Assembly (NCBI RefSeq): GCF_021028975.2
Contig: NC_059439.1
Coordinates: 23,570,294-23,624,000 of the forward strand
Origin: Sphaerodactylus townsendi
Lineage: Eukaryota
Direction: 5' to 3'
DNA length: 53,707 nt
This document shows positions 3,096-51,658 of this stretch, one piece after another; position 1 is the stretch's first letter, and each line of letters starts with the position of its first letter. The notes under the pieces are model-generated. The model was given only the letters and a program-made list of their open reading frames with translations, was not told where the DNA came from and made no database searches. The position numbers and the translations under genes were made by a program.

Positions 3096-3270
3096 NNNNN
3101 NNNNNNNNNNNNNNNNNNNNNNNNNNNNNNNNNNNNNNNNNNNNNNNNNNNNNNNNNNNNNNNNNNNNNNNNNNNNNNNNNNNNNNNNNNNNNNNNNNNN
3201 NNNNNNNNNNNNNNNNNNNNNNNNNNNNNNNNNNNNNNNNNNNNNNNNNNNNNNNNNNNNNNNNNNNNNN
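3096..3270. other. Assembly gap (175 N)
   Basis: Run of N. Confidence 1.
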
Positions 3271-7750: not shown

Positions 7751-8217
7751 AACTATCAAATCTATTCAACGAAGCTCTCAGGAGAATATACTGCATGCAA
7801 TGAAAACCACAGCTTTTCATCATCAATAAATAAACAAATAAAAAGTGTTTTCTTTTGCTTATTACCAAACTTGTGTTCCCAGTATTTCTGTCTCCGCTCC
7901 TAGTGGCCAGGGACATTATCAACTTCAGCTCCATGTCTTTCAACTGTCACTGGGTGGGACCCAACTAGAGTTGGACCCAACAGCTCCATGTCTTTTTACT
8001 GTCACTGGGTGGGACCCAACTAGATTTTAGTATGGTGAAAAAGAAAGGTGCTCACTGTGAACCACTTTAAAAATATGCTAGGGATCAGGAGAGCTGTACT
8101 GAAAAAAAAGCCATGTAGCAAGGAGTAGAATTGGTGAGATGGGTTGCTAAAACTGGCAGAATCTCACCCATTAGGAAATCTCCATGCAAAAACAACGATG
8201 TAAAAAATCTACATAGC

Positions 8218-9153
8218 CTATAAAAAGAGTTTCTCTCCTAGAGTTCTTTTAAGGGATTCCCTGACTTCATAGTTCTTCAGAGAGTAGACAATAGGATTAA
8301 GCATAGGTGTCACAATCGTATAGAGCAGAGACAGCATTTTTTTAACTTCAGGTGAATAGCTGGATTTGGGTCTTAGATAGACGAGGCTCCCACTCCCATA
8401 AGACAAAGTCACCACAATGAGATGGGATGAGCAAGTAGAGAAGGCCTTGCTTCTACCCGCGGCTGTAGACATTTTGAGGATGGTGGTTAGGATATGGACA
8501 TAGGAGATCAAGATGAGCACAAAAGGGAACATCAGGAACACCAGCGTAGAGCCGATGGATTGCATCTCGTATTGGTAGGTGTCAGTACAGACTAGCATCA
8601 ATACCGGTGGTGCATCACAGAAGAAATGATTGACTTTGTTGTAACCACAAAAAGGTAGATTGAAGATCCAAGCTGATTGCAGCAGTGAGACCAGAATTCC
8701 AATCACCCAGACTCCACCCAGCAGCTTGTGGCAGAAGGTCCTGTTCATGACAGTGGCGTAGCGCAGGGGGTTGCAGATGGCAACATGGCGGTCATAGGAC
8801 ATGGCGGCTAAGAGGAAACATTCGGCACACCCAAAGTGGAAGAAGCAGTACATTTGAATGGCACAACCAACAAAGGAGATACTTTTGTTCTTCATCAGTA
8901 GGTTGAGCAGCATTTGGGGAACTGTGTCCAAAGTGAAGCAGATCTCAATGAAAGCCAGGTTTCTCAGAAAGAAGTACATGGGTGACTGGAGGGCAGGGTC
9001 CACCAAGGTGATGACAATAATGAGGATGTTCCCTGCCACCGTTGCAATGTACATTACCAAAAGAAGGGGGAACAGAAGCAGCTCTACATTTGGCATGCTG
9101 GAAAACCCAACAAGTATAAATTCAGTCATCACAGTTTGGTTTCTCCACTTCAT
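8218..9153 (-). CDS. Olfactory receptor (family 10-like), intact, 311 aa
   Basis: Start MKWRNQT (N-glycosylation site) at 9153, downstream of a pyrimidine-rich splice acceptor (AG at 9175-9174); LQSPMYFFLRNL, MSYDRHVAIC, KAFSTCSSH, PMLNPIVYSLKN. Confidence 0.93.
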   Translation of the reverse strand: MKWRNQTVMTEFILVGFSSMPNVELLLFPLLLVMYIATVAGNILIIVITLVDPALQSPMYFFLRNLAFIEICFTLDTVPQMLLNLLMKNKSISFVGCAIQMYCFFHFGCAECFLLAAMSYDRHVAICNPLRYATVMNRTFCHKLLGGVWVIGILVSLLQSAWIFNLPFCGYNKVNHFFCDAPPVLMLVCTDTYQYEMQSIGSTLVFLMFPFVLILISYVHILTTILKMSTAAGRSKAFSTCSSHLIVVTLSYGSGSLVYLRPKSSYSPEVKKMLSLLYTIVTPMLNPIVYSLKNYEVRESLKRTLGEKLFL

Positions 9154-10264
9154 TTTCTTTAAGACTATTTTTGCTAGAAGATAGAGTGAGAAGAAGGAGA
9201 GAAGAGAGGAGATAAGTTCTGAATACTGAGAGTGGGTTCCCCACCCCAATCTACCTCTTTATTGTTTCCTCTGCTTTGTGTGCAGTAACCACTCCTGATT
9301 ACTGATGTAGCCATGACCACTTCCATGGTGTTAAGTAGAGTCAGGCCTCTTAGAGGTTCAGAGGGACACAGGTTGCTGGTGAAACTTAACAAATGCCAAC
9401 TAATTACTAAGCATCTAAATCTGAAGCCTGCTTTGATCCCCGGAGTCCCATGCGGTTTCTCTCTGCCCCCCTCTGTATTTCTCTGATTAGCCTCCCAGTT
9501 TCTGAGTATTAAGCTGAGGTAGGGTGGCAAACCTTTGGTACCTCCAGATAGCAGGACAGCATCTCTACCAGTCTCACACTGGCTGCCAGTGGGCTGGGAT
9601 GGGAATTGTAGTCCATAACATCTGGAGTGCCAAAGGTTCGCCACCACGGGGTTAGGGTATGGGAGATGGGAGGAATACATTTAATTCTGTCATTGGAGGG
9701 TGCACAGTTTGTCTTAGCTCCAGAGAAACCCAGACTATTTCCAACTGTTAAGACACAGAGACATAGTATCAATGGGTTTTTAAGATCATACAAACATTGG
9801 CGAAACTTCAGAAATGGCAAAAAAAAGCATCTAAATGTGAAGCCTCCTTTGATTCTCCAGTCTGATGATTCTCCTGGCTGCTTATTTGAATGACCCCAGT
9901 TAGAGTGTTGGGCAAGGATATGAGAGATGTGTACAGATCGTCATTATTTTATGAACCTTGGGCAGTGACTGTCCCTGAGCCCATTCTACCTCACAGAGTT
10001 TTTGAAAGAATGAAATGTATGAAAAGAATGAAAAGAATGAATGAAACCCTGATCTCCTTAGGGGAACGAAATAAAAAAATGCACCAGAGAGAGAAGTAAA
10101 TTTCATTCTATCACTACAGGATGCACAGTTTGCCAGAGCTCTCAGTTCCCTCAACACGTTAATGCTTGCTATTTGTTTTTTTATTGATCAGTGCTTAAAT
10201 TTTATTGATATAATATTGCTTTGAGTTCATTTTTTTTTTGCATGATCGTATCCACGTTTTCATG

Positions 10265-21457: not shown

Positions 21458-21848
21458 TACCTTTCACTTAGGTTCTTAGCAAGGGAGTGAACAGATCTCT
21501 ATCACATCCCTCTTTCATTTCAATTTTGTTTGTGTCAAGTATGGGTGCAAGGAATCGCTGTCCCATTCTGGTGAAGAAGGATAAAAGTAATGAGAAAAAG
21601 ATAAAACTAAAATATTGGTTGATGAAGGGAAAGACAGGCAATAAAAATAACTTTTTAAGACAAATAACTCAAAATTCATGTTTAAATGCTTTCCATCTAT
21701 CCACATTGTGCACACCTGCAATTATTCTTGGATGGCTACTATAACATGCGTTAGCAGAAATATGGCAGGTGAGTAGATAAAAAAAAAGGTAGAGGCTTGT
21801 TACTACACCTCCAGAAACAATAAACCATTTATCTCTCCTCCAGACACT

Positions 21849-22808
21849 ATGAAACACACAGAAGACACTGAAGAAAATCAGACCAGCATCACAGAATTCA
21901 TTCTTGTTGGGTTTGCCAACCATCCTGAACTTCAGGCCCCCCTTTTCATCATCTTCCTTCTAGTGTACACAATAACTCTGACTGGAAATGTCCTCATCAT
22001 TCTCATCACAACAATGGACTCTGCCCTTCAGAGTCCCATGTACTTCTTCCTCCGGAACTTGTCCTCCTTGGAAATCTGCTTCAATTTGGTCATTGTCCCA
22101 AAGATGCTGGTGAACTTTTTGGTGGAGAATAAATCCATCTCCTATGCTGGTTGTGCTACACAAATGTATTTCTTCTTCTTCTTTGGTGCTGCAGAGTGCT
22201 GCCTTCTTGCTGCGATGGCGTATGACCGATACGTTGCCATCTGCAACCCGTTACGCTATCCTGATATCATGAACAGAAGGGCGTGCTTCCAATTGGCCAG
22301 TGCTTCCTGGTTCTCAGGCTTCCCTGTGTCTACTGTCCAGACCACATGGATATTCAGCTTGCCGTTTTGTGGACCTAACATAGTCAACCACTTCTTCTGT
22401 GACAGTCCTCCAGTACTGGAACTGGCCTGCGCTGATACCCACATGTTTGAACTGGAAGCTCTGACAGCCACCGTACTCTTCATCATGTTTCCTTTCCTCT
22501 TGATTCTTCTCACGTACGTTCGCATCATCACTACCATCCTGAGAATGCCTTCAGCGGAAGGCAGACACAAAGCCTTTTCAACCTGTTCATCTCACCTTGT
22601 TGTGGTTACTCTGTTTTATGGCACAGCCACCTCAACCTACTTCAGACCAAAATCTAGCTATGCTCCAGACACAAAGAAGATCCTCTCTCTCTCCTACACT
22701 GTCATCACTCCCATGTTAAATCCCATCATCTACAGCTTGAGAAACAAGGAAGTAAAAGGTGCATTGAAGAGAACACTGGGCAGGATAATGTTTGTGCACC
22801 AAAAATAA
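21849..22808 (+). CDS. Olfactory receptor (family 10A-like), intact, 319 aa
   Basis: ENQTSITEFIL, LQSPMYFFLRNLS, MAYDRYVAIC, HFFCDSPPVL, KAFSTCSSH, PMLNPIIYSLRNKEV. Confidence 0.96.
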   Translation: MKHTEDTEENQTSITEFILVGFANHPELQAPLFIIFLLVYTITLTGNVLIILITTMDSALQSPMYFFLRNLSSLEICFNLVIVPKMLVNFLVENKSISYAGCATQMYFFFFFGAAECCLLAAMAYDRYVAICNPLRYPDIMNRRACFQLASASWFSGFPVSTVQTTWIFSLPFCGPNIVNHFFCDSPPVLELACADTHMFELEALTATVLFIMFPFLLILLTYVRIITTILRMPSAEGRHKAFSTCSSHLVVVTLFYGTATSTYFRPKSSYAPDTKKILSLSYTVITPMLNPIIYSLRNKEVKGALKRTLGRIMFVHQK

Positions 22809-23802
22809 TTTTGTTTTGCGGTAGTGCCAACTGCATAATCCTGTTTCCCACTTTGTTTCCAGTGTAGTTTGCAGAGGTAGCAGAGGTAGTTTGCCATTGT
22901 CTTTCTCTACAGAGGAAGCCAGTGTAGTTTGCAGAGAAGCAGAGGTAGTTTGCCATTGTCTATCTCTACAGAGGAAGCCATTGACCCTGCTTAGCTTCTG
23001 AGGAGATCAGGCTAAATCATGCCACCTTTCCTCCTACTCTTCCATGGTTCATTTTTAAAGTATTGTGTTATTGACACAATATGGTGGTCTTTGCAGTGCA
23101 TTTCATTTTTTAAAATGTGTCATTTTACTCTACCATTTTCAAATGTTGATGATAAAAGAAATTCTGATAGCGGTGGATAAAATCCACATATAAACTTGCT
23201 CGTTACTGTAGAAATTATTTCCCACCCCTACATTCTACCCTTTAAAAGCAGTGGCTTAAAATGTTGGCAACTCTAAAGCTGAGTGTCATATTCAAAATGT
23301 TGGCTTGTTTTCAAAGTGATCACTTTGAAGTAACAACTAGCTTGTCCATGTTTAATGTACCTCTAAAATTACAAAGAAAATAAATGTACCATTAATTGCC
23401 GAATCACTATCTAAGACAAACTCCCCCTATATACTGTTTGCGTCTACCAAACAAATTAGGAAGGAAAATGTGATGAGTTATGAAATGGTCTTTATATCTA
23501 CAATTAGCTGCATTTATTGTCCCAACAATCTCTAACACAGATGGAAATGTAGCAGATGGTAACCATTCAAATGAACTGATTATAAATATCAGCACAAATC
23601 AAGACAAACATATAGCTTTAAAATAAAACAAATTTCTTCAGATTCATTAGTATTGAAGACACAATGTTAGGACAAAAAGCCTGAGCACATATTTCACAAT
23701 GGTGATCGTTTCAAAGGATCTTTACAAGTGAGTTAGCTTCTGTCTTACTCAGTCTTCTATAACTTCTATAACAGTTAAACCATTTCTATCATTCAAGTGA
23801 AT

Positions 23803-26771: not shown

Positions 26772-28066
26772 ATAAGAACATAAGAACAAGCCTGCTGGAT
26801 CAGACCACAGTCCATCTAGTCCAGCACTCTGCTACTCGCAGTGGCCCACCAGATGCCTTTGGGAGCTCGCATGCAGGTTGTGAAAGCAATGGCCTTCTGC
26901 TGCTGCTGCTGCTCCTGAGCACCTGGTCTGCTAAGGCACTTGCAGTCTCAGATCAAGGAGGATCAAGATTGGTAGCCATAGATCGACTTCTCCTCCATAA
27001 ATCTGTCCAAGCCCTTTTTAAAGCTATCCAGATTAGTGGCCATCACCACCTCCTGTGGCAGCATATTCCAAACACCAATCACACGATGCATGAAAAATGT
27101 TTCCTTTAATTAGTCTGAATTCCCCCCCCCCCCCCAGCATTTTCAATGAATGCCCCCTGGTTCTAGTATTGTGAGAAAGAGTGAAAAATTTCTCTCTGTC
27201 AACATTTTCTACCCCACACATAATTTTATAGACTTCAATCAAATCTCCCCTCAGACGTCTCCTCTCCAAACTAAAGAGCCCCAAACACTGCAGCCTCTCC
27301 TCATAAGGAAGGTGCTCCAATCCCTCAATCATCCTCATTGCCCTTCTCTGCACTTTTTCTATCTCTTTGATATCCTTTTTGAGATGTGGTGACCAGAACT
27401 GAACACAGTACTCCAAGTGTGGTTGCACCACTGCTTTATATAAGGGCATGACAATCTTTGCAGTTTTATTATCAACTCCTTTCCTAATTATCCCCAGCAT
27501 AGAGTTTGTCTTTTTCCCATGGAACTATCAACTAAGATGCCCGAATCCCTTTCCTGGTCTGTGACTGATAGCACTGACCCCTGTAGCGTGTATGTGAAGT
27601 TTGGATTTTTTGCCCCTTTGTGCATCACTTTACATTTTACTACATTGAACTGTATTTGCCATTTCTTAGCCCACTTGCATAATTTATCAAGATCCACTTG
27701 GAGCTCTTCACAATCCTTTGTGGTTCTCACCACCCTAAATAATTTAGTATCATCTGCAAACTTGGCCACCACATTACCCACCCCTACTTCCAGGAAATTT
27801 ATGAATAGGTTAAAGAGCACTGGCCCCAAAACGGATCCTTGGGGAACACCACTCCCTACATTTCTCCATTGTGAGAACTTCCCATTTACACCCACCCTTT
27901 GCTTCCTGTTCCTCAACCAGTTTTTAATGCATAGGTGGACTTCCCCTCTTATTCCTTCACTGCTGAGTTTTCTCAATAGTCTTTGGTGAGAAACTTTGTC
28001 AAAAGACTTTTGGAAATCCAAGTAGACAATGTCCACTGGTTCCCCCTTATCCACATGCCAGTTTAC
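26772..28066 (-). mobile_element. CR1 LINE 3' portion with reverse transcriptase domain
   Basis: VYLDFQKSFDKV, SGVPQGSVLGP, KFADDTKL, HLEYCVQFWSP; (TTCTTATG)n tail. Confidence 0.95.
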
Positions 28067-28149
28067 ACCCTTTCTTTTACCATTTTTTATCTTTTTTTCT
28101 TTTACCATCAAATGACAGCTGACATGGTTGCCCCATAAGGCTTCCAATG

Positions 28150-28572: not shown

Positions 28573-29562
28573 TTACAGATATAGGTCCTTGGACGTCTCA
28601 AGTTTTTTTCTAATAACATTCATTTTCAGAATTATTTTTTTCAAGGCTGTTTTCATATCCTGGTTCCTTAAACTGTAGATCATCGGGTTGAGCATTGGTG
28701 TGACAATGCTGTACACCACAGCTATGATTTTGTTCATGTTAAAGGAAGAACGGGTGGTGGGGCTGACATACATGAAAATCACAGTCCCGTAGTACAAAGA
28801 GACAACTGTCAGATGAGAGGCGCAGGTTGAGAAAGCTTTGTGACGTCCATGCGAGGATGGTATTTTCAGAATGGTTATACTGATGTAGATGTAGGAGACC
28901 ACAGTGGACAGGAATGTGCTCAGAATCACCATAGCTGAAAGCAGGAATACAATCTTCTGGGTAAGAGATGTGTCTATGCAAGCCAGGCGTAATAGAGGGG
29001 GAAGGTCGCAGAAGAAATGGTTTATGACATTGGGTCCACAGAAGGGTAAGTTAATCACCACAATAGCAGCTACTAAAGGGGACAAGCAGCCCCCTGCCCA
29101 ACAGCCCATCACAAGAAGCACACACACTCTTTTACTCATGATGGTAGAATATCTCAGAGGGTAACATATGGCAACATATCGATCATAAGCCATAACTGCA
29201 AGCAGGAAGCATTCAGATGACCCGAGGAAGAAAAAGCAATAGGATTGCAACAAGCACCCAGCAAAGCTAATGGCATGCCTGTTTGTTAACAAGATGGACA
29301 ACAGTTTGGGAACAGTGGAAGATACGTAGCCTATATCCATCAGTGATAGGTTCCCTAAAAAGAAGTACATGGGAGTTTGAAGGTGGCTGTCAGTCTTAAC
29401 TGTGATGACTATGGTGATGTTGCCGAGCACTGTAAGAAGGTACATAATCAGAAAGAGAAAAAAGAGAGAGATTTCGATTTTCCTAGTATTTGGGAAGCCC
29501 AGAATGAAAAACGTTGTCACTGCCGTATAGTTCTGATGTTCTTTAAGCCACTTTTCCAGCAT
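28573..29562 (-). CDS. Olfactory receptor (family 6/11-like), intact, 329 aa
   Basis: NYT glycosylation site, LQTPMYFFLGNLS, MAYDRYVAICYPLRY, KAFSTCASH, PMLNPMIYSLRN; ATG directly follows a splice acceptor (ctcttatag|ATG). Confidence 0.95.
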   Translation of the reverse strand: MLEKWLKEHQNYTAVTTFFILGFPNTRKIEISLFFLFLIMYLLTVLGNITIVITVKTDSHLQTPMYFFLGNLSLMDIGYVSSTVPKLLSILLTNRHAISFAGCLLQSYCFFFLGSSECFLLAVMAYDRYVAICYPLRYSTIMSKRVCVLLVMGCWAGGCLSPLVAAIVVINLPFCGPNVINHFFCDLPPLLRLACIDTSLTQKIVFLLSAMVILSTFLSTVVSYIYISITILKIPSSHGRHKAFSTCASHLTVVSLYYGTVIFMYVSPTTRSSFNMNKIIAVVYSIVTPMLNPMIYSLRNQDMKTALKKIILKMNVIRKKLETSKDLYL

Positions 29563-34301: not shown

Positions 34302-35029
34302 TCAGTTACAGGCAAAAAAGGTACTGGCTGGATATTAGGAAAAAATCCAGCAGCTAGAGTAGTTCAGCAGTGGAATCAGCTGCCTAGGGTGGTATTTAGC
34401 TCCTGCTCATTGGCAGCCTTCGAGCAGCGGCTGGACAAAACACTTCTCAGAGATGCTTTAGGCTTCTCAGAGTTGCCCTAGAATGGTCTCTCTGGACCTT
34501 TCCAGCTCTGTGATTCTATGAACTGTCCTGCTGTAACTACAGAAAAGGAAATACTTTTCACTCAGGTTCTCAGCAATGGATTGTCCTTCAGCAAAAAAAA
34601 GGTAATACCTTTCGTATAGGTTCTTAGCAAGGGAGTGAGCAGATCTCTATCACATCCCTCTTTTATTTCAATTTTGTTTGTGTCAAGTATGAGTGCAAGG
34701 AATTGCTGACCCAATCTGGTGAAGAAGGATAAAAGTAATGAGAAAAAGATAAAACTAAAATACTGAAGGGACGGGCAAGCAATAAAAATAACTCTTTATC
34801 ATTGAAGGCTGAGGTCTCGAAATTCATGTTTAAATACTTTTCATCCCTCCACATTGTCCATATCTGCAATTATTCTTGGTTGGCTACTACAATATGTGTT
34901 AGCAGAAATATGGCAGGTGAATAGAAAAAAAAGGTAGCAGAAATATGGCAGGTGAATAGATAAAGAAAGGTAGAGGCCTGTTACTATACCTTCAGAAACA
35001 ATAAACCATTTATCTCTCCTCCAGACACT

Positions 35030-35988
35030 ATGAGACACATAGAACACACTGAAGAAAATCAGACCAGCATCACAGAATTCATTCTTCTTGGGTTTTCCAA
35101 CCATCCTGAACTTCAGACCCCCTTTTCATCATCTTTCTTCTCATATACACAATAACTCTGACTGGAAACGTCCTCATCATTCTCATAACAACAATGGACT
35201 CTGCCCTTCAGAGCCCCATGTACTTCTTCCTCCGGAACTTGTCCTCCTTGGAAATCTGCTTCAATTTGGTCATTGTCCCAAAGATGCTGGTGAACTTGTT
35301 GGCGGAGAATAAATCCATCTCCTATGCTGGTTGTGCTACACAAATGTATTTCTTCTTCTTCTTTGGTGCTGCAGAGTGCTGCCTCCTTGCTGCAATGGCA
35401 TATGACCGATACGTTGCCATCTGCAACCCGTTACGCTATCCTGATATCATGAACAAAAGGACATGCTTCCAATTGGCCAGTGCTTCCTGGTTCTCGGGCT
35501 TCCCTGTGTCTATTGTCCAGACCACATGGATATTCAGCTTGCCATTTTGTGGACCTAACATAGTCAACCACTTCTTCTGTGACAGTCCTCCAGTACTGGA
35601 ACTGGCCTGCGCTGATACCCACATGTTTGAACTGGAAGCTCTGACAGCCACCGTACTCTTCATCATGTTTCCTTTCCTCTTGATTCTTCTCACTTACGTT
35701 CGCATCATCACGACCATCCTGAGAATGCCTTCAGCAGAGGGCAGACACAAAGCCTTTTCAACCTGTTCATCTCACCTTGTCGTGGTTACTCTGTTTTATG
35801 GCACAGCCACCTCAACCTACTTCAGACCAAAATCTAGCTATGCTCCAGACACAAAGAAGATCCTCTCTCTCTCCTACACTGTCATCACTCCCATGTTAAA
35901 TCCCATCATCTACAGCTTGAGAAACAAGGAAGTAAAAGGTGCGTTGAAGAGAACATTGGGCAGGAGAATGTTTGTGCACCAAAAATAA
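35030..35988 (+). pseudogene. Olfactory receptor paralog of 21849-22808 with a 1-bp frameshift (possibly a sequencing error)
   Basis: ATG at 35030; 959 bp versus 960 bp; C5 at 35118-35122 versus C6 in the paralog; the rest of the ORF is open and about 97% identical. Confidence 0.85.
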
Positions 35989-36339
35989 TTTTGTTTTGCG
36001 GTAGTGCCGATTTCATAGCTGTTTTCCACTTTGTGTCCAGTGTTAAGTTAATAGGAGCTAGAAACTTAAACTCTTCAAATAAAAAAAGTGAAAGTGATGG
36101 ACAGTCACTGAATGCTGCACTCCCATATTAACTATTAGAAGTGTGGTTGCTTGCTCTATTCAGCAATCTTGCTTGTCTCACAATTATTAACAATACATTT
36201 CTTCCTAGAGGGCCCCAGGATCCAACACAACCTTGAGATTCCAATCTGGATCCAAGGATGTAGGTAAGGGGAGTGGGTTCCTGGGTTTAACATCCCCATT
36301 ACATATCTGAAGCCCCGCCCCTTGTTTGTGGGTGGTTCT

Positions 36340-38210: not shown

Positions 38211-38820
38211 TTGATTCTAGTGCTGTTATTTCTTCAAAAGTATGATCATGCACACACAAATACAGATGCATATTTGATATTGTTGAAAGGATTATGGCGG
38301 GAGGGAGACTGTATTGAAAAATGTCAAACATAATAGTGTCAATGACAGAGCATTCGTCTTTGAGAATTCCTTGGAAATGTGCCCCTCAGTTCGCTAACGT
38401 AGCAATGAAAGGTGCATGAAGTTGTAAGGATAAAATTAAACTGTACATTTTTGAAATATAAAGTGTTGTCAGGAATGGGGAATCAACATTCTGTAGTACT
38501 GCTAATAAATGGCTAAGAGATGGACTGAAATATACATATGTTTATTGATACTTTGACTGCACTTTCACACGGTTTTCTTCTGAGTAGCTCATATTAGCTT
38601 CAAGAGAATTTCACACTGGCACTGTGTAAAGACAGGTTGGAAAAAAGTGTCTCATGTTCCTCAAGACCATTCCTTAAGCAATGGTTATCTGACTTTTTTT
38701 TTAATCATTAGGGAACTCACAATGAAAAACTAAACAGAAAAAAATCAGCTTCAGGATTTACCATGATAAAAACTAATTTACAAACATTTCAGTTGTGTTT
38801 AATGAGATAGACTTCACAGA

Positions 38821-38971
38821 GGCTCCTTCTGCACACGCAAAATAACGCATTTTCAAACCACTTTCACAACTGTTTGCAAGTGGATTTTGCTCTTCCGCAC
38901 AGTAAAATCCAGCTGCAAAGTGCATTGAAAGTGGATTGAAAGTGCATTATTCTGCATGTGCAGAATGAGCC
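38821..38971. mobile_element. MITE, Harbinger-like (family A variant)
   Basis: GGCTCCTTCTGCA...TGCAGAATGAGCC, TSD AGA. Confidence 0.82.
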
Positions 38972-38977
38972 AGAGAT

Positions 38978-39742
38978 TTATTCTTTTGAAGATATCAACT
39001 TTAAAACTGTTTTCTTGAGAGCGCCCTTTACATCTTTGTTCCTCAGACTGTAGATAACAAGGTTTAGTATTTCAGTCATAATGGAATAGAAAAGAAAAAG
39101 CAGTTTGTCCACATGTGGAGAGTAAGTTGATTTGGGGCGTATGTAAATGAATATGGCTGTGCCATAGAATAATGAGACCACAATGAGATGTGAGGAGCTG
39201 GTGGAGAAAGCATTCTGTCAGCTTTTGGCTTTTTCATCCTTAAGACGGTTGCAATGATACGGAAATAGGACAATAGCATCAGCATGAAGATGATGAAGAC
39301 TACAAAGGCAGCTGCCACAATGATTTGGATCTCATTCCAGTAAGTGTCCTCACACAACAGCTTTAACAGAGGCAGGATTTCACAAAATAAATGGTTGATG
39401 ACATTGGAATTACAGAAACGAAGGATGAAGTCGAAGGTAGTATGGCCCACAGCCACCAGGCATCCGCAGACCCAAGAGAGGGCAGCAAGCTGAATGCATA
39501 CCTCCTTTCTCATGATGACCAGGTAATGGAGTGGATTGCAAATGGCAACATAGCGATAGTGAGCCATAAAGGCTAGGAGACAGCACTTAGTAACACCAGA
39601 GCAGTGGTAGAAATGCATTTGAGTAGCACAGGCTTGCAAGGAGATAGTTTTATCCAGAGCAAGGGTGTTATCAAGCAGCTTTGGGATAGTGACAGAAATA
39701 TAGCAGATCTCCAAGAAAGATAAGTTTCCGAAGAAGAGTAAA
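38978..39742 (-). pseudogene. Olfactory receptor pseudogene lacking the N-terminus and TM1
   Basis: Starts at LFFGNLSFLEICY (TM2); decayed motifs [34 protein letters not shown]; frameshift plus TGA near 39218-39232. Confidence 0.92.
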
Positions 39743-39780
39743 AAGTGAGTATCCTCACATAATATTGCCACCAAGTTATT

Positions 39781-40698
39781 CTATGTTATATTTTTTTTCC
39801 TAAAGAACTGGTCTCTGGTGTTTATGTCTGGCCTGAGCAAAATGATATACATTTTAGGGGCAAATATGCAACCCAACAATCCAGCACTGGATGCCAAGAT
39901 AGAAAAGATCTCAACAGCCACCATGTATTTCCCTTTGGTGCTCAGGTAGGTTGGAACAAAGGAGATCCAGACACTGCAGAACACCAACATGCTGAAGGTG
40001 ATGAACTTGGCTTCATTGAAAGTATCTGGCAGCTTCCTGGCCAGGAAGGCAACCAAGAAGCTGACGCTGGCCTGAAAGCCCATGTAACCCAAGCCCATGT
40101 AAAACATGGTGACTGAGCCTTCATTGCACTCCACTATGATTTGTCCAGATTGGGAGAACTTGTCAAGGTCTGGGAATGGTGGAGAAGTACTGAGCCAGAT
40201 CGTGCAGATGCCAACTTGAATAAGAGAGCAAACCAGGATGATGTAATTGGCCAGCCTTTTCCCCAGCCATACATACTCTCTTTGTTGTGGTTTCCTGGAC
40301 TTCAGGGCTGATGAATGCCAGAACCACGGTGATGGTTTTGGCCAAGACACAAGACATTACAAAAGAAAATGCATTGCCAAAAGCCGCCTGTTGAAGAAGG
40401 CAGGTCACCTTGTTGGGTTGTCCCATGAACAAAAAAATGCAAAGGAAGCAAAGCAAGATGGAAATCAGGAGGAGGTGGGTAAGATCCCGGTTGTTGGCTC
40501 TGACAATGGGTGTGTTTTTATATTTGACAAAGGTTCCAAAGACAACAAGGGTGAGCAGAGAAAAAGAGAGAGAAGCAGAAGCCAAACTGATTCCTAATGG
40601 CTCATTATAGGCAAGAAAAGTCTTAACTTTAGGGATGCATCCATTTTGGTTCTCATTTGGATGCTCATCATCTGGGCACAGGATACATTGAAATGCAT
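39781..40698 (-). CDS. V2R exon 6 (7TM), with frameshift
   Basis: [66 protein letters not shown]; acceptor ttttcag|AT. Confidence 0.93.
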
Positions 40699-43600
40699 CT
40701 GAAAAGAAATAGAATGGCAGATATAGGACACAGTGTGTAACAGACTTCCTTCTGTGATACACCTCTGAAGATGCCAGCCACAGATGCAGGTGAAACGTTT
40801 GGAACAAGATCCACCAGACCATAGCCACACAGCCCAGAACACCCACCAGAACCAGCTGGTTCATGAGATCAGAGTCCTCCACTCATGTGGAGGAGTGGGG
40901 AATCAAACCCAGTTCTCCAGATTAGAGTCCACTTTCGAAACACTTTTCTAGGCTGCACATAAATTCTGCATTGTATTTTTATTTAGTTTATTTAGCTTCC
41001 ATACAATATCAGCATCTGTTTCTGTTTTTCTAGTTCAATATATCGTGTTGCTAACATTGTTTGTGTTTCATTAGATAAGGTGCTGTATTTGTTGAATTTC
41101 TTGTCACAGATGGGGGTTTCTGGACAGATGGACAACACAAACTTTTAGTATTATAAACATGAAACTTTTGGGTAGTTGGAAGCCACGTACCTGTCTGATT
41201 TGAAATTGTCCCTTCTGGGCACTGAGAACAATCATAGCAGCAAGATGAACTTTCTTCCCTGAGAACTTTTCTGCTATATCCAGGGTGGCATCTCTCAGTG
41301 CACAGGGAATGAGGCAAGGTCTATCCATAATGAAAATAAATCTGGTTTAATTTAAGGTAATGACTAGGACATTTTTGTACCTTCTTGGATATTCATCTCA
41401 ATGTGGTAAGAGGATTTGAATATTTCAGTGAAGCTGGCTCAGGCCCTTTCCGCACGGGCGGTTTATGGCGCCCTGGGGACGGCAAAAATGCCGTCCCCAG
41501 GGAGCCATTCACACAGGGGTCATAGCTGCTGCGCAGCCGCGCCGCCCTCGCGCCGCCTGACCGGCTGGAAGCCGGCATTTCCCAACCTCGCTTGGCAAGA
41601 GAGGTTGTTGGGAAACGTCGGCTTGGAGCTGCTGCCATGCAAATGCCAGCGGCTTCCAGGCGCCTTCCCTCCCCCCCCCGACCGGGCGACTCACCTGTCC
41701 TGCAGCCCTCCAGCGCGTCGCCGAGGCCTGGGGACATGCCCCCTTTGCCCTGCGACCTTGGAGCGGTCGCGCAGGGCAGGGGGCATGTCCCCTGGCCTCG
41801 GCGATGTGCTGGAGGGCCGCAGGACAGGTGAGTCACTCTGACAACGGCGCAACTCTGCACCGTCGTCCCTGCCGTTTCTGGGACCGTCCATGCGAATGGT
41901 CCCAGAGGGGTCGGGTCGGTGTGGATTGCGCCGACCCGACCCCTTCCGCCTCCGTGTGGAAACGGCCTCAGAGAAGAGAGTTTTTAAGGCAATAGACAAA
42001 CAGAGATGATTCACCGTTACCTGCCTCAGGATAATAACCCTGGAATCCTGTAGTAGTCTCCAATCCAAGTCCTAGCCATGGCTAACCTTGTTTGCTTTTT
42101 AAATCCAAATAAAAAATACTGACAAAGTACACACTACTGACAGAGGGGGGTTTTTTGCCATCAAGTGGTGACATTAGTGGGATATATGGTGACCTTTTAT
42201 AGTTTTCAAGGCAGGAGATGTTCAGAGGTGGCTTGCCATTGCCTGCCTCCAAGTCATAATTCTTGTATTCCTTGATTGTATGCCATCCAGATTCTAGCCA
42301 CGGTCAACCCTGCTTACCTTCTGATATCTGACAAGGGCTAACCTGAGCTTTCCAGGTCAAAGGTAGGACATTTTAATGGTCAATAATTTAGAAAGTTGCC
42401 ATCAGTCAGAAGCAATGTAACAGCATATAACACACACACACATAATGCATTGATTGAACTATTGGTATAGAATAGAATAGAATAGAATAGAATAGAATAG
42501 AATAGAATAGAATAGAATAGAATAGAATAGAATTTATTATTACAGCCTTTCGGCCAGTCATTAAAACCAGAATTGGCATATGTAAGGATACATAATATTC
42601 CAGTTGTACAGCGATCCAAGGTGTGAGATCAATACATTAAATACCATTAACTTAAGCCATTATTGCAAGTTTCATCATACAATCTTAAGCCATTATTGCA
42701 AGTTTCATCATACAATCCGGTTCTCTACCTTAATAATAATCTTCGCTTATCGTATGCCAGCGTACAAAATTTGGCCACCTTCTGTGATTTAGAGGGAACG
42801 CAGTCTTCTAAGAAAATTCTTACAAAATTAGAATCTGAGTTGGCTATAAATGGGTGTACATGGAGAATTTTCAATGGTTGAATTAAAAGCAGCAGTGGCG
42901 TAGGAGGTTAAGAGCTCATGTATCTAATCTGGAGGAACCGGGTTTGATTCCCAGCTCTGCCGCCTGAGCCGTGGAGGCTTATCTGGGGAATTCAGATTAG
43001 CCTGTGCACTCCCACACACGCCAGCTGGGTGACCTTGGGCTAGTCACAGCTTCTCAGAGCTCTCTCAGCCCCACCTACTTCACAGGGTGTTTGTTGTGAG
43101 GGGGGAAGGGCAAGGAGATTGTAAACCCCTTTGAGTCTCCTGCAGGAGAGAAAGGGGGATATAAATCCAAACTCTTCTTCTCTTTTTCTTCCCTTTCGCT
43201 ATTATGAAGCTCACAGTGCAATAGAATTTGTGATACTGAGTCCACTTCCCCTGAGTCACACACACGTGTTCTTCTGTGCCAAGGAATTTTTTGAAATTCT
43301 CCCATCAGATTAACTGATGTCAAGGTATCGAAGCGAGCTCTTGACAAGGCCCATCGGCTTCTTGCCAATGTTATATTAGATAGCTAGGAAGAAGCTAAAA
43401 TAGGAAGAAGCTAAGAAAAACCCATGATTTTAATGGTTTATATGTCACAGGTAGTCAAGGGAAATTTGTTTGCATCTCAATATCACTGAGCCAATAATAG
43501 ACCATGGCCATTGCTCAGTTATCTAATTCCAAAAGTTGCATTGGATCCATACCACACTGATTGAGTTTTAATATGATTTTTTCTAGCCATCCAGGGTGGG

Positions 43601-46600
43601 GTGTCACCCTAACTATTGGTATACATTTTGCATTGTGGTGAGGAACAGAGAAGTGTGGGCTGTGTTTCATGGGTCTCAGCTGAATGTTGTCAGAGAAAAA
43701 AACTCAGTGTTTAACAGCACTATCTGACACAAGAAGTAGTTTACTTTTGTGTTTATTTTGCAGCTTAGTAGTGTTAGATCTCCTTGGTCCTAATAACTTC
43801 CAATGGGAACTGGTTCCCAAGAGAAACAATGAAATCATCTGAAGATAGTGCTCTGTGCAAGGTCTGTGTCACTATTAACCCATTGGGTGATTTCACATTG
43901 CAACATTTATTAGGCAGACTTTGATTACGGGGTGGTTTGCAATTGCATCATGTATCTAATCTGGAGGAACCGGGTCATCTATGTTTTACTCCCAGAAATC
44001 TGGGTACTCAGTTCACTGACCTTGGAAGGCTGAGTCAACCTTGAGCTGAGTACCTGAAACCACTTTCTATGTGAATCAAACACAGTTCATGAGAAGAGCT
44101 TCGACTGCAGTAATGAAGGTTATCATACTGTGCCATGGGGATCTTATCTTTAATAATAATACTACTAATAACTGTAATAGTAACAACGATGAAGATAATG
44201 GTGATGGTTACACTAATGGCAATGAACATTATAATAATAACGGTTGGGGGGAAAAGAACAGTAAATACGAAGATGCTAAAATGTAGGGGGCTCACCTGGT
44301 TAAATCTTTTAGGCCATATGATAGCATCACTTTTGATGGTAAATCTTTGGTCAGATGAGGCCCAGCGATTCACCATTCCAACTCTTACAGGGATAAAGGA
44401 CTTATTGGGGAAATGGACCCAGTTTACGATGTCATATCCAATTGGCCATTCCTGTTGTTCATTGAAATATACTTCCTCCCCAATACTGTTGTTGAAACAC
44501 AGTTTTTGCAAAAATGGATGGAGCTAAATGGGAAAGCAAAACTTCAGAAGCTACAAAACAGGTCAAAGAGTTGCAATCAGGTAAGGATTGTCATGCAACA
44601 GCACATATTCAATTCCAATTCCAAAGCCTTTATTGACATTATAAGTTACAGAATTAGTAAAAAGGGGCATTTATCTACTAACTGAGACATTAAAGCATTA
44701 AAATACATTAAAATACAACGTTGAACATTCACAACATTCACGCACTCATAAAATAATTTAGCCGTTACTACTATGTAGGCAATGATTGCGCCTGACCAAA
44801 TAGTTCCTCAAAAAACTTGCAACATTCTCACATACGAGATCACAGGAACCGCTGAGTAGAAAATTCATAACAGATGGTAGCCTGACATCGTTTGAGCTCT
44901 CTATCAATGGACAGATGTACATAGAGAGTAACGACTCGTATATTGGACATTCCAATAGTACATGTTGAACAGTCTCAGCAACGGCCATATTACATTGACA
45001 TAACCTGTTCTCATATGGAGTGTTATTATACCTGCCAAGAGTCATAGCGTTAGGCAGACAGCACATATTTAAATGATTTAAAGTATGATCACAAAAATTC
45101 ATTGGGTCAAATCCAAAGGTGGGTGCAATCCAAAGGTGGGTGGTCGAAGCTGCATTGGGAGTAGCAGAAGGGTTGTGCTGGTGCCTATGCCACCAGGAAA
45201 CTGGCACAGATACTGACACTAAAAGACTTAGGTGGGCAGCTGCCCATTCAAGTACCTAAATCTGTTCACTGGCCTTTTCAGTTGCTGACCATGAGCACAT
45301 ATGCCCATGCTGACATTTGGGGGCTGTTCCCAGGGACAGAGCTGACTCTAGTTACCTCCCAACATTTTGGCTTGGGAATGGCTTCCTTCAGCTGCTCAAA
45401 CTTACACTAACAAAAAAGGCAGTGTAGGTAATTTCGACTATGGGTTCTCCCAAGGAGAAAAATGTTTCTCCTTCTCTTCTGTTCCCTACTGCAACAAATT
45501 AGCAGTCATGCTGAAGAATGGAGCCCTACAAATCCAGTGTCACCCCTCAAGATAGAATCATGAATGCCAGAGAATTCCAAGAGCTTGAAATAATCTGACT
45601 CTTGTATTGATTTATAACAAGGGTGAGCCAGCATGGTGTAGTTGATACTGTGCCCACTCTGCCATGGAAGCATCCTTCATGAACTTCATTTTCCTGTTTT
45701 GACTAAATGCTCTTTGTCATGGAAGATGCTATTGCTACAGTAAAGGGAAGTCACATATGACTATGAAAAGCATCTTTGCCTTTGATCTCCTGGAGGGAGG
45801 ACAGGAAACTATGCAGAGGTGCCAGGATGAAACTTCAAAGGCCTAAATTACCTCGTGACCTGAACAGAGTTTTCCTGAGAAGGGGAAAACAAAGGTTTTT
45901 GGAATTTCATCTTGAGACGTGGTCAGAGAAGCATCTCTGGGCCATGGGTTCTCGGAATGGGGACAAAGAACCAAAAGAAATGTAACCAGTTGAGCAACTT
46001 TTTTTGTTTTGAACTTTTACAATAAATCCTTGAACGATCAGCTGGTCTGGAGTCATTAGGAGGGAAAAAAACCCAAGACCGAGGTGAGATAAGAGTGGCT
46101 CTCCCAAGCTTAATCTCAACCTCAGTCGTCATATGTGACTTCCCTTTGCATGCAGATGGTGAGACCCTTCTCCGGCAAATGAAGACACTACAACGACAGG
46201 CTTGGAAAAATGGATTGGGCCGCAGCCCAATTTATTAATGTATATGCATATATATATAACATCTATTTACAGAGAAGCTAGGGTAGCAAACAGGTCGCAA
46301 CATTAGGCGATCCCAATCTCCATTGGGGCCACCAGCGGGAAGGGGAGCCCCAGAGGTAACCCTCCGGCTTCGACCCTTCCTGCTCCTGCTGAGGAGGCGG
46401 GCACCGGCTAAGCCCACAGGCCGCCTACCGACCCACCATCCTCCCCAAGCTTGCTGGGGTATCGGGCACCGGCTAAGCCTACCGGCTGCCTACCGGCCCA
46501 CCCTGCCCCACTCCCTGGGGTGTCGGGCAATGGCCAAGCCTAATGGCCTGCCAACTGGCCCGCCACACACCCCGGCCCTTCCACAGGGCACAAGCATGGG

Positions 46601-49600
46601 AGAACCTGCCGGATGGCTCATTTTCTCCCCAGATGTTGCGACTCCCATTGCCAACCCGCAGGGCTGTGACAATTGTGAACTAAGCAACAACCCCTTAAAT
46701 TCTAGGGAGGGGGGGTGTGCCACGCCTTTCCAAGTCTCGCCGCCAAGAAGGACGAGCTCTGGGTGTGGTGCCCCTTTTATACTCAGGCTCCTCCCGCCTT
46801 TACTGGCTCGAAGCCAATCATTGCACCCTCCTACAGCATGCCGTCCGGCCATGCTTTGCAAACTACTTTGCCTCCTTGGCTCACCCCAGCCGCAATGGCT
46901 GCCCCCGTTGATCCGGTTGCTGCTATTTACTTTAGTGATAGCATCTTCCATGACACTCTTCTTGACATATTTAGTACTGCATAAACAGAGGAAATATTTT
47001 ATTTTCTGAAAAGCCACAATGATCTACACAAATCAACATAAAAAAATGCTAGGAGGAATGATTAAAGGCAATAGTGTGGGAGTACCAAAGAAAGAAAGAG
47101 ATACCAAAGATTCAGTACATTTTTAATGTTTCTTTACAGTACTGTGATTTGTCTCACTGGCACATTGATGAGAAGGAAAAGTCAAACATTAAAAGTCAAA
47201 TATTACCTCCCATAGTTGATTTCTGGGATGGTCCATCACAGGGTTTTTGCTCATCGTTTGGTGTCTGAATGTGTAAGAAGCATTTAAAGCATGTGCAAAG
47301 GCATAGACTGCATTGTAGATGCTGTAGCTCTGACCAGACATCTGCATTTCAAACTGATCCCCTCCAAGACTCTCCAGCTTTTCCTCTCCTGTGCATTTCC
47401 ATAAATTTGAGCTTCTACAAAAAAATACAATATCCCAGAACTGTCGCATTAAAAAAGTTGGGTGTTGGTAAAGCTTAAACCCCTGGAGGAAGCTCTGAAA
47501 TCCTGGTACATCATTTCTGTGGTCTGCCATAGACAAGGAGCCATGGAAAAACTGGGCATTCCAGTCTGTCCGAACAATCTTTGAAGACAAGTCCCACTGG
47601 GCTGTTGTGATCCAAATCTTCCTCTGCATATATTGCTTACCAATTTCTTCATTTGTATTTATGAGTATTTGTAAACTATGCATGGAGTAAGTGTCTCCAA
47701 ATGCAATAATCACATTGGCTTCTGTGTTATGTAATGTCCTTAAAATATTTCCCTTAACAAATATGTCATATTTATTATTGAAATCATCATGCAAGGGTAT
47801 TGGGGCCTTCTCTGTGAAGGCAACACAGATTCCACGCCTACTGAGCGAGAGGGTCACAGTTTGAGCAAACAGTTCTCCATTGTCATTGTCAGCAACAACG
47901 AGGCCAATCCATGTCCATTTGAAATATTCTATCAATTCCACTATTCCTTCTAACTGAGCAGCTTCGTTTGGAACCATTTGGTAAAAAAAGGGGAACTGAA
48001 TTTTATTACTCAGTGATGGGTGAGCATAAGACAGCTGTAGAAAAATAACAGATATTTTCTTAAAACCTGACAATTGTCTCCCTGAAATTATGCCTATTGA
48101 AAGTAACCCTCCAGTTCCCCGACTTCACACATGCTAAAAACATGCAGGATCTTCAGACAAGGCATTTTGGAAGCATTAATGAAAAACAAATTACAGTGAA
48201 CTCCTAACATCAGAATGACTTTAGTGGTGGGGATGTTTTTGCTAATAATATTACCACTGTTCCTGCTACTATTAGTGGTACAGTCCTACTACTACTAGTA
48301 CTGCAGAATGACAGTAACATAATTACTGCTGCTGATGTTAGAACTACTACGGGAACACTGTGGCTAAACCTGCGTAATCTTTATAACAGAAAAGCAGCAT
48401 TCACTGTGAGTTTCACGCAGCTATGGAACTCTGACTGAGGCTCATTCCGCACATGCAGAATAATGCACTTTCAAACTGCTTTCAGTGCTCTTTGAAGCTG
48501 TGCAGAATGGCAAAATCCACTTGCAAACAGTTGTGAAAGTGGTTTGAAAATGCATTATTTTGCGTGTGCGGAAGGGGCCTGAGATAATCTTGAATGAACC
48601 TTGATTGAATGCTCCCATCTCCTGTTTTCTCCATGGAGTTCTGCATTTTCTACCCTCAAATGTTTTATTTCCAGCCTCCAAATGTTTTAAATGAATCCCC
48701 TTTTCAAATGATCCTTGGGGCTGAAACATTTTGAAAATGTCTTCAGGTTGCTGTGCTATCTCCTTAAAATGTTTTCCGAGCCACTCTGCAATCCCCAGAC
48801 CTCCATCTCAGTGCCATTTTCTGTGCTCAGTCTCTGTTCCCCCTCTCCTATTCTTGGAGCCTTTCTGCTGTTTGATTGCTATTGGGGGATGCTATTCTTT
48901 GAAGGATTCAGCACAGAAGGCACGCAGAATTACAGCACGAAGGTGTGAGGCATAGAAGGCAGAAATCGACAATGTACTAAAAAAGGGGGCAAAAATTAAA
49001 AAATGCTGGCCAGTATTTGTTTCAAAGCTGTGAATGCAGACATAAATCATGTATAGAGGGACTGGCCACCCTTAAGTTCTGGGTTCGCCTGTGCTTTAAT
49101 TCGGACACTGGTAGCCTTATCAATCATATCCTCCCCAGCTCCATGGATCTAAGTGGTGGCGGGCAGTTGAAATTAAAATACTTTCCCTGGGATTCTCCTG
49201 GGAGTCTTTGCAAATGCTACCTCCTTCCGAACTCTTTTTTCAACTAAAAAGGCGACTCCTTGACCAGGAGCTACAAGTTCTACAAGACCAAGTGCGAAGT
49301 AACTGTTCCCCCTTCTTTTTCAACATCAAATTCAAAACCAATCTGATGGCAAACTATCTGAGTATACTCCAAGAGCCCAAGCTTAGATGGATATACACAA
49401 GGGCTCGTTGTAATTCCTTCCCTTGTTCTGTACTCCAAGGGAGGTTTCTTAAAATTGACTCGCAAGAGCGGAAATGCCCCCACTGTACTATAGTGGTGCA
49501 ATCCATGGAACATATAATGCTTAACTGCCCCAAATATGAAGAAGCTAGGACCAGGCTTTTGACTCTTCTTCCTGCTAAGTTTAAGGAATACTCTGTTGCT

Positions 49601-51164
49601 GGGAAGGTTGCATTCCTACTAAACAACTCTTCTTCTGTGATTTTAAATTCTGTAGCTAGGTTCCTTTTAGGAACTTTGGAATAATACCTGTGGTGGTTTT
49701 ATGTATGGAACTTCTTTCTGGATAATGCTGGTTGTTATATTGGTTTTATGCCTAATAAAGGTTTTGTGTATGTATGTATAGAGGGACTGAAAACATGCTT
49801 TTAGAGTTTTCTGTGGAAAGAGCCATGGATAAACCTTGAAATAGCAGTGCAACAGTCATCAATATTTTCAAAGGCTTTCCTGGCCAGAATCACTTTCATG
49901 GCCGGAATCACTGTGTGATTTCCGGGCTGTGTGGCCATATTCTAATGGCAGTTTTTCCTGACATTTCGCCTGCACCTGTGGCTGGCATCTTCTGAGGATC
50001 CCCAGTCATCAATATTATTCCAATAATATAGATTGGAAAATATAATTGCACAGCTCTGGTGACCATTCATAGCTACATTCGAACATCTTAAGCTCTGTTA
50101 CTGCAGTACCTGCACCATTGTGTGCAGCTTTTACTTCACCATTCACCACTAGGTTAGTTTCCTTACATATCTAAGACGTGAGAATTCATCAACTACATCA
50201 CTGTTAGAATGGAATAACATGACAAAATGTAGACTTAGGTAGGCTGTTTGGGCTCAAGTATGATGGATCAGGAATGAACTGTCATTTTGTGTTGGGACAC
50301 TGTACACTGTACATCCCTACCTGAGGGATCTTGTAGAGGTCAAAGATGGTAGCCATCTGGATGGACGCTTCAGAGCTAAGTCCTCCAACAACTGCTGACA
50401 TCTCATATTGCTTTGCACAGTTGAAATTAGGGATGTTTTCTTTCGGTGAAGACAGCAAGGATAGCGCGATATCATACTCTGATCTTCCTCGTAAGAGGCT
50501 GTCATAGAGGCGGAAGCCCAGTGTGACATTGGGTAAGAGATCTGGATCCTTGTTGATTTCATCAACCGTAAAAATGAAGGTGAGGACATGCTGATAATTC
50601 TTCCTCACAAACCTAAAATGGAAGTAAAGAATTCATTCTTTGTACTGGCAGCCTTCTCCCTTCCCTATTTCCAAAATGCCGAATAGTAAAAGAAAAACTA
50701 TTAAAGATCAAACACAAAGAGTCAATTAAATAACCTGATGATAGGACTGGATTCATCCAGCTTTTCTGTTGATAAGGAAGAAATGAAAGATCCCCTTTGA
50801 CCACCCCAAAAGGCTATATTGAGAATCCTGTGACTTGCTATGGACAAAAATAGTTTGGAACACAGTTAAAAGGAAGGGGGACAAGATCGAATTAAATAAA
50901 ACTAGCATGATCCAACCCAATATTCTAAACATGAATCAAGTTGTACATTTTGTGGGTGGTGAAGCCGTCGATCCTTTTGCATTGTGCAGAACAGTCCCCA
51001 CTTCCTCTGTTCCACATATGCGGTTGTTTGAGCTTTGACTGTAGTGGGGAACGTTCAGATTGGAGTTAATAATGTCAACACGTAAACTGAGATATTTATG
51101 CTATGGCTAAAAAAATTAAAATTTGGATGCCTGTACTTTATTCAAGTTGCATACACATTTACTG

Positions 51165-51247
<83 letters not shown>

Positions 51248-51658
51248 CTCTTGGGCAAAGACTTGAACATATTATCTGGTCAGACAGCGATATGCAGAGA
51301 TAAAACTGCACTTTGCCTTAAGGAATTGACTGTTGTGGAAAAAGGTTGGACTACAGTTAATGTTAGCACGTACGCTAAGATATCCATGCCGTGGCAAAGA
51401 TCCTTAAGATCTGGATGCCTGTAGTTTATTTAAGCTGCATACTCACATATACACATATCTATTGAAATTCTGGGGCAAAGACTTGAACTTCTCTTCTGGA
51501 CTGACAGCCATACGCAGAGATGAAATCGCACCAATAACATGATTTCCTGGCTTTAAATAATCAACTTTATATCGGTGAGCGGTTGCCCTACTAATTCCCT
51601 TCAAATTCTTGCTGACAGCTTGAGGCAGAAACAGGAGAAAGAGCAGCAGCAGCAGCAT
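39781..51658 (-). CDS. Vomeronasal type-2 receptor (V2R, class C GPCR), 6 coding exons, ~866-868 aa if the exon-6 frameshift is repaired
   Basis: Exons 51658-51447, 50612-50321, 48034-47207, 44523-44296, 41320-41191, 40698-39781; all introns GT-AG with compatible phases (2,0,0,0,1); signal peptide, Venus flytrap domain, cysteine-rich domain and 7TM. Net +1 frameshift at ~40270-40312. Confidence 0.93.
40741..40860 (+). mobile_element. Penelope-like terminal repeat fragment with hammerhead core, in V2R intron 5
   Basis: CCT-CTGAAGA-T-GCC..GGT-GAAAC-GTT at 40762-40799. Confidence 0.65.
41191..41320 (-). CDS. V2R exon 5 (cysteine-rich domain)
   Basis: [15 protein letters not shown]...[17 protein letters not shown]; atag| and |gtacgt. 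Confidence 0.92.
41442..41967. mobile_element. GC-rich palindromic MITE, Harbinger-like (family C)
   Basis: GGCCCTTTCCGCACGG...CCGTGTGGAAACGGCC, TSD TCA; internal palindrome 41690-41835. Confidence 0.82.
42467..43400 (-). mobile_element. LINE 3' fragment with CCHC-type C-terminus (RTE-X-like) and (CTATT)n tail, interrupted by a SINE
   Basis: RWALSRARF...[19 protein letters not shown]; (AATAG)n at 42467-42532. Confidence 0.55.
42888..43181 (+). mobile_element. Full-length tRNA-derived SINE (Squam3-like)
   Basis: Pol III A and B boxes, CORE-like GGTGACCTTGGGC segment, (CTT)n tail. Confidence 0.85.
43990..44110 (-). mobile_element. Sauria SINE-like fragment
   Basis: Minus strand GCTCAAGGTTGACTCAGCCTTCCAAGGTCAGTGAACTGAGTACC; related fragment at ~33090-33165. 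Confidence 0.55.
44296..44523 (-). CDS. V2R exon 4 (228 bp)
   Basis: [22 protein letters not shown]...[11 protein letters not shown]...IIWP; catttag| and |gtgagc. Confidence 0.93.
44610..45100 (-). mobile_element. LINE 3' fragment, CCHC C-terminus (RTE-X-like)
   Basis: [28 protein letters not shown]; AATAAA followed by a (GAATTG) tail. Confidence 0.6.
45742..46147. mobile_element. Unclassified ~400-bp element with a perfect 20-bp TIR
   Basis: AAAGGGAAGTCACATATGAC (45742-45761) and GTCATATGTGACTTCCCTTT (46128-46147). Confidence 0.7.
46190..46975 (-). mobile_element. GC-rich dispersed repeat related to 17610-18330
   Basis: Shared terminal sequences; TATAAAA-like box on the minus strand near 46775. 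Confidence 0.45.
47207..48034 (-). CDS. V2R exon 3 (828 bp, Venus flytrap domain)
   Basis: [24 protein letters not shown]...FKWTWIGL...[10 protein letters not shown]...FHGSLS...[15 protein letters not shown]; ctacag| and |gtaata. Confidence 0.95.
48439..48579. mobile_element. MITE, Harbinger-like (family A)
   Basis: TSD TGA. Confidence 0.85.
49010..49780 (+). mobile_element. LINE 3' fragment, CCHC C-terminus (RTE-X-like)
   Basis: [33 protein letters not shown]; AATAAA followed by a (GTAT)n tail. Confidence 0.6.
49860..50000 (-). mobile_element. Penelope-like terminal repeat fragment (mutated hammerhead core)
   Basis: Same family as 7578-7700; CAGTCATCAATATT occurs on both sides (49853 and 50003). 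Confidence 0.65.
50321..50612 (-). CDS. V2R exon 2 (292 bp)
   Basis: [35 protein letters not shown]...IPNFNC...LYKIPQ; ttttag| and |gtaggg. Confidence 0.95.
51168..51244. repeat. (GT)n microsatellite
   Basis: About 38 uninterrupted GT units. Confidence 0.98.
51447..51658 (-). CDS. V2R exon 1 (signal peptide)
   Basis: [16 protein letters not shown]...[14 protein letters not shown]; donor AT|GTGAGT in phase with exon 2. Confidence 0.88.

Follow-up and report, generated by a model that had tools for sequence, protein, structure and literature searches.

On the minus strand of contig NC_059439.1 of Sphaerodactylus townsendi (assembly GCF_021028975.2, positions 23,570,294 to 23,624,000), the last exon of a vomeronasal type-2 receptor gene (V2R, class C) ends in a TAG codon and is followed, in the same reading frame, by sequence of an olfactory receptor gene (OR, class A). 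The question raised by this locus is whether the two could yield one hybrid receptor. V2Rs and ORs are unrelated families of GPCR, and separate populations of sensory neurons normally express them. The locus was analysed within the whole stretch of 53,707 nt, referred to below as the window, and compared with the corresponding loci of relatives. The arrangement probably arose by a local deletion between two chemoreceptor genes that already adjoined each other, with the shared frame due to chance and no chimeric receptor produced.

The window is an OR array (Table 1). It contains a direct duplication carrying the OR10A4-like gene (21458-22865 and 34606-36043, 86-96% identical) and a retroelement on the minus strand (27033-28147) made up of two adjoining ORFs between two ORs, the second of which matched RVT_1 (reverse transcriptase, E 3.3e-20). 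The sole N run of the window (175 N) is at 3096-3270. Directly past the OR stop, the minus strand at 38800-38975 holds internal near-repeats (gcactttcaatccactttcaatgcactttgcag) and resembles a short interspersed repeat.

Table 1. Positions of the features in the window and of the V2R and OR genes at the orthologous loci of four relatives (positions are those of the window unless a species is named).
Feature	Position	Strand	Evidence or remarks
OR	22-774	+	
OR	8218-9249	-	
OR, OR10A4-like, intact	21849-22808	+	91% amino acid identity to Eublepharis
OR	28573-29562	-	
OR10A4-like copy	35194-35988	+	5' part broken
First AATAAA past the V2R stop	38977-38982	-	798 nt downstream; overlaps the OR stop codon
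OR remnant, TM6-TM7 and tail	38981-39217	-	Second frame; Pfam 7tm_4 profile 206-278, E 3.8e-08; 74-81% amino acid identity to orthologs
TGA nonsense codon of the OR	39218-39220	-	In the restored OR frame; replaces the R of KSRQKAFSTC in the orthologs
Out-of-frame run of the V2R/OR frame	39076-39229	-	About 50 non-OR codons, up to the TGA at 39078-39076
OR frameshift	39230-39234	-	A5 run; 5 nt against two codons in the orthologs (RMKSAKSRQKAFSTC), 1 nt missing
OR10C1-like remnant, HTPMYFF (decayed) through TM2-TM5	39235-39757	-	True frame, which is the V2R frame; Pfam 7tm_4 profile 30-201, E 5.3e-21
Junction segment	39758-39780	-	Between V2R stop and OR remnant; would contain the deletion breakpoint
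V2R stop TAG	39781-39783	-	Context TAG-A; normal V2R C-terminus
V2R exon 6 part 2, TM4-TM7 and tail	39784-40308	-	Frame B; Pfam 7tm_3 profile 115-251, E 4.5e-48
V2R frameshift	40300-40311	-	1-nt insertion relative to Podarcis and Hemicordylus (GCATTCATCAGCC vs GCATTCATGGC); MAFFT, orthologous exons
V2R exon 6 part 1, TM1-TM3	40311-40697	-	Frame A; Pfam 7tm_3 profile 1-104, E 6.6e-33; preceded by acceptor ...ttttcag
V2R exon 5	about 41195-41320	-	P0288 aa 503-547; Pfam NCD3G (cysteine-rich), E 2.2e-13
V2R exon 4	44284-44523	-	P0288 aa 431-510; stop-free; no Pfam match
V2R exon 3	47204-48112	-	P0288 aa 124-431; stop-free; Pfam ANF_receptor, E 5.4e-30, ligand-binding region
V2R exon 2	50318-50608	-	tblastn, P0288 aa 50-146; stop-free; Pfam ANF_receptor, E 5.4e-10 (domain start)
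V2R exon 1, candidate	51400-51658	-	ATG at 51658 and signal-peptide-like start; 3' limit provisional; ORF scan (ATG, then hydrophobic start)
Sceloporus undulatus (L001)	V2R last exon ends 7461; window OR homology resumes 10912	same for both genes	
Podarcis raffonei (L002)	V2R last exon open 7524-8420; OR ATG 10001	same for both genes	V2R not called as a gene
Hemicordylus capensis (L005)	V2R last exon 6076-7041; OR ATG 10001	same for both genes	775-aa V2R model
Heteronotia binoei, gecko (L006)	V2R exon remnant 8356-8788; OR ATG 10001	same for both genes	V2R remnant frameshifted and decayed

The junction and its reading frame

The minus strand was translated from 40350 down to 39076 and held a single stop codon, the TAG at 39783-39781, after which the same frame ran open for 234 further codons, through OR sequence and up to the TGA at 39078-39076. 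The reading past the TAG in the V2R frame starts NNLVAILCEDTHFLLFFGNLSFLEICY. Translation and Pfam searches bore out the initial annotation, which had described a V2R end, a single TAG and an in-frame OR without its head. It had put the start of OR homology about 40 nt past the V2R stop, in agreement with the homology found here, which was clear from about 39757-39737, or 25-45 nt after the TAG. V2R homology stopped at about 39793, and clear OR homology reached back to about 39757, in the HTPMYFF region. A caveat made at the same time, that the TAG is at the normal end of a V2R, also held: P0288, the 847-aa full-length representative used as reference, aligned to its last residue at 39793, and the tails of the orthologs agreed (FFKKK* in Podarcis and FFKKGRSVQ* in Sceloporus; the tail of Hemicordylus is about 25 residues longer). 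The OR frame had further been described as open to 39076, and this stood as far as stop codons are concerned, but the part from 39229 to 39076 is out of frame and is not OR.

The 23-40 nt at the junction gave no significant local alignment to the spacers or OR 5' ends of six relatives when compared with shuffled controls, the best alignment being to Hemicordylus (p about 0.02, uncorrected). TGGCAAT, at 39770-39764, possibly derives from the 'GN' motif of OR TM1, but the alignment was not significant. A match of frame is expected in 1/3 of cases and the 13 linker codons are stop-free with a chance of 0.52, which gives a combined chance of about 0.17. Continuity of the frame is therefore not beyond chance, and the position of the OR remnant in the V2R frame is most likely a chance outcome. 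The long open stretch after the linker is what remains of the OR's own frame.

Condition of the OR and of the V2R

Protein similarity and gene order identify the OR piece as orthologous to a conserved OR10C1-like gene. Its best matches were all OR10C1-like (squamates, turtles, birds and crocodilians), and amino acid identity to the annotated proteins was 68-73% in nine squamates and about 60% in the other three groups. The flanking genes of the remnant are arranged as they are in Sceloporus and Hemicordylus. In the protein collections, identity rose no higher than 73% for the OR piece, 65% for the V2R piece and 91% for the intact neighbouring OR; at the DNA level, the closest OR among relatives, from geckos, was about 81% identical.

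As judged from its sequence, the OR is a dead, unitary pseudogene, because it has no start codon or TM1 and carries a 1-nt deletion, a TGA in its true frame and changes at 29 of 156 invariant residues. The first ~55 codons, with the start codon, the N-terminus and TM1, are gone. When three OR N-termini were searched by tblastn against the whole window, the missing part was found nowhere and only the known ORs were matched. In place of a seven-helix 7tm_4 domain in one open frame of ~310 codons, the profile was covered from 30 to 201 and from 206 to 278 only, in two frames, the second of which runs to the OR's own stop (TAA, 38980-38978). The 29 altered residues were counted among the 156 that are invariant in nine squamate orthologs; the same count, made for each ortholog by leaving it out in turn, gave 0-13. 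Hallmarks of the family are among the changed positions (MAYDRY to MAHYRY, KAFSTC to NAFSTS, PMLNPxIYS to EILNLVIYS), and the prolines of the orthologs' PILNPIIYS, including the P of NPxxY, have been lost. On the window branch, dN of the OR was 2-7 times that of the orthologs (three-taxon Nei-Gojobori), rates that are rough, dS being near saturation.

The exons of the V2R were searched one at a time against representative proteins. The V2R is a six-exon gene on the minus strand with all exons present, exon 1 as a candidate only; this candidate agreed with the extent of the gene in the initial annotation and received no tblastn confirmation. A retrocopy insertion was ruled out, the gene having introns. 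The domain layout is that of a V2R, with ANF_receptor in exons 2 and 3, NCD3G in exon 5 and 7tm_3 in exon 6, in the order of P0288. The coding sequence is interrupted once, by a frame switch at about 40311-40300 (40308/40301 by tblastn) in non-homopolymer, non-repetitive sequence, and this is the only visible defect of the gene. Past the frameshift, exon 6 also has an in-frame insertion of three codons near 40280-40272 relative to Podarcis and Hemicordylus. The dN/dS of exon 6 on the window branch was 0.16, similar to that of the orthologs. Going by its coding sequence, the V2R is probably a young pseudogene too.

The initial annotation had proposed that readthrough of the TAG, or a single substitution in it, would give a class C/class A chimeric receptor. 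Such a functional chimera, made by readthrough or from an allele without the TAG, would draw on the frame that continues across a single stop codon, and the join would be compatible with textbook GPCR topology, the V2R tail being cytoplasmic and OR TM2 starting on the cytoplasmic side. Against it, no continuous open frame spans the V2R and the OR: besides the TAG between them, there is one frameshift upstream in the V2R exon and another downstream in the OR, which has no TM1 and goes out of frame ahead of TM6. The true frame of the OR is closed by the TGA, the DRY and NPxxY hallmarks, which serve G-protein coupling, are gone, and the match of frame has the chance of about 0.17 given above. Vertebrate programmed readthrough likewise involves an open frame past a single stop codon, and its known context is UGA-CUAG, from which the TAG-A found here differs; the extension of the present case is made of pseudogene and out-of-frame sequence and is absent in the orthologs. 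Where the end of the V2R could be read, in three relatives, its stop leads into a non-coding spacer only, unrelated to the sequence found here and without any OR-like C-terminal extension. The proposal is not supported, a functional chimera is scarcely credible, and no hybrid receptor is expected from the junction.

Orthologous loci and the origin of the junction

The OR10C1-like gene of Sceloporus, Podarcis, Hemicordylus and Heteronotia is preceded by a V2R last exon of the same orientation, the two being separated by a spacer of 1.2-3 kb. The relatives have 1.4-3.5 kb between the place where V2R homology stops and that where OR homology with the window begins again; the window has about 56 nt. 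In Elgaria, Eublepharis and the turtle Chrysemys, the 10 kb upstream of the OR contained no V2R, and no OR was found within 10 kb after the V2R ortholog of Tiliqua. The pairing occurs in geckos, cordylids, lacertids and iguanians and presumably dates from early squamate history. A literature search found no published report of a V2R-OR fusion or of V2R/OR10C1-like adjacency.

A quick maximum-likelihood tree was built from 114 squamate V2R last exons, the window exon being entered without 39967-40021. Exon 6 of the window fell into a clade with exactly the OR-adjacent V2R exons and one Tiliqua model (SH-aLRT 99), and on this placement the V2R of the window is orthologous to the OR-adjacent V2Rs. 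Some of the models available for these genes are partial. The Podarcis raffonei exon (plus strand) has 299 open codons, and the 7.5 kb preceding it yielded no exon 5; many database models of squamate 'V2R26-like' proteins, of ~299 aa, are the last exon alone. In Sceloporus undulatus an N gap at about 6500-6975 lies inside the V2R last exon, so that the 513-aa V2R model of this species is incomplete.

The initial annotation had ascribed the junction to a DNA rearrangement that fused a V2R onto an OR. An event at the DNA level did bring the V2R stop beside OR coding sequence; the partners, however, were not unrelated loci, being neighbours in four other squamates. Because the V2R is already upstream of the OR in those four, and because the V2R of the window is orthologous to theirs, the event is best described as a local deletion between old neighbours, with no foreign DNA involved. 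A join mediated by a transposable element was ruled out, no repeat being present at the junction.

From these observations we infer a single deletion and the following order of events. In the squamate ancestor, an OR10C1-like gene would have been preceded, at a distance of a few kb and in the same orientation, by a six-exon V2R. In the present lineage, about 1.4-3.5 kb would then have been lost, from a few tens of nt past the V2R stop to about codon 55 of the OR. The deletion would have removed the near poly(A) signals of the V2R, the promoter and 5' exon of the OR, and the OR start codon, N-terminus and TM1. The 1-nt deletion, the nonsense codon and the many replacements at invariant sites of the OR would have been gained since that deletion, or before it.

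The same juxtaposition could also have been created by the assembly, through a collapse or mis-join, in which case the true genome would have the usual spacer and an OR with its 5' end entire, and the frameshifts might be consensus errors. The OR frameshift does lie in an A5 run, a context prone to such errors, and in the best independent sequencing run 74% of the sampled 31-mers of 38900-40800 were present, a figure that leaves room for an artefact. There is, however, no N run near the junction, and no pair of repeats capable of causing a collapse was observed. Both sides of the junction are the neighbours expected there, in the expected order and orientation, which a random mis-join would not give. 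The V2R frameshift is outside any homopolymer, and the OR is degraded over its whole length, independently of the junction, by its nonsense codon and its 29 changes at invariant sites. An artefact is thus very unlikely, and the deletion between adjoining genes is retained as the explanation.

The remnant as a possible 3'UTR, known counterparts and significance

In a further reading, the V2R would be alive or at least transcribed, the exon 6 frameshift being an error or a polymorphism, and the OR remnant would form its non-coding 3'UTR, with the mRNA ending at the AATAAA of 38982-38977. In the orthologs such a signal occurs much nearer to the V2R stop (39 nt downstream in Sceloporus and 141 nt in Podarcis), in the spacer that is missing here. 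The V2R itself is consistent with this reading, in that its six exons are stop-free apart from one 1-nt insertion and its exon 6 has an ortholog-like dN/dS on the window branch. Human OR ORFs, moreover, ride on the transcripts of upstream genes: chimeric transcripts join OR coding exons to such genes, as in TRIM58-OR2W3 and TRIM58-OR2T8, and in PLEKHA7-OR7E14P (Flegel et al. 2013, PMC3566163). Against this reading, the V2R frameshift lies in non-repetitive sequence, and no RNA run containing the stretch was found; the sequencing runs that matched it were DNA runs from 4-5 organisms. We regard a 3'UTR role as unlikely. If it were true, the mRNA of a class C receptor would, in vomeronasal neurons, have gained its regulatory tail from the remnant of a class A receptor.

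The human transcripts resemble the present case in that the transcript of a gene can carry along an OR ORF or pseudogene that follows this gene in the same orientation. They differ in being products of RNA-level splicing with RNA-seq and RT-PCR support, whereas the arrangement in the window is a juxtaposition in the DNA, known from genomic sequence, and its OR is dead.

The OR remnant is closest in kind to the unitary OR pseudogenes truncated by deletion, with which it shares a single-exon OR in its ancestral place, a lost 5' end, a frameshift and a nonsense codon, decayed motifs, and intact orthologs elsewhere. Unlike typical members of that group, its deletion ends a few tens of nt from the stop of an upstream gene; this gene, in whose frame the remnant lies, encodes a chemoreceptor from a different class of GPCR. 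The V2R corresponds to the squamate 'vomeronasal type-2 receptor 26-like' genes (class C, six exons), having the same ANF_receptor, NCD3G and 7tm_3 domains and the same long last exon, and it groups with the V2R26-like orthologs of Podarcis, Hemicordylus, Sceloporus and Tiliqua. It is unlike them in its 1-nt insertion in the last exon and in its 3' flank, the native sequence having been replaced by the OR remnant.

For the proposed class C/class A hybrid the outcome is negative, and the matter can be considered closed: the arrangement is one of ordinary pseudogene decay, in which two decaying neighbours were joined by a deletion. The V2R/OR10C1-like pairing may be of modest use for studies of chemoreceptor gene regulation, and a pair that is so tight and so old could help to show where vomeronasal regulatory domains end and olfactory ones begin.
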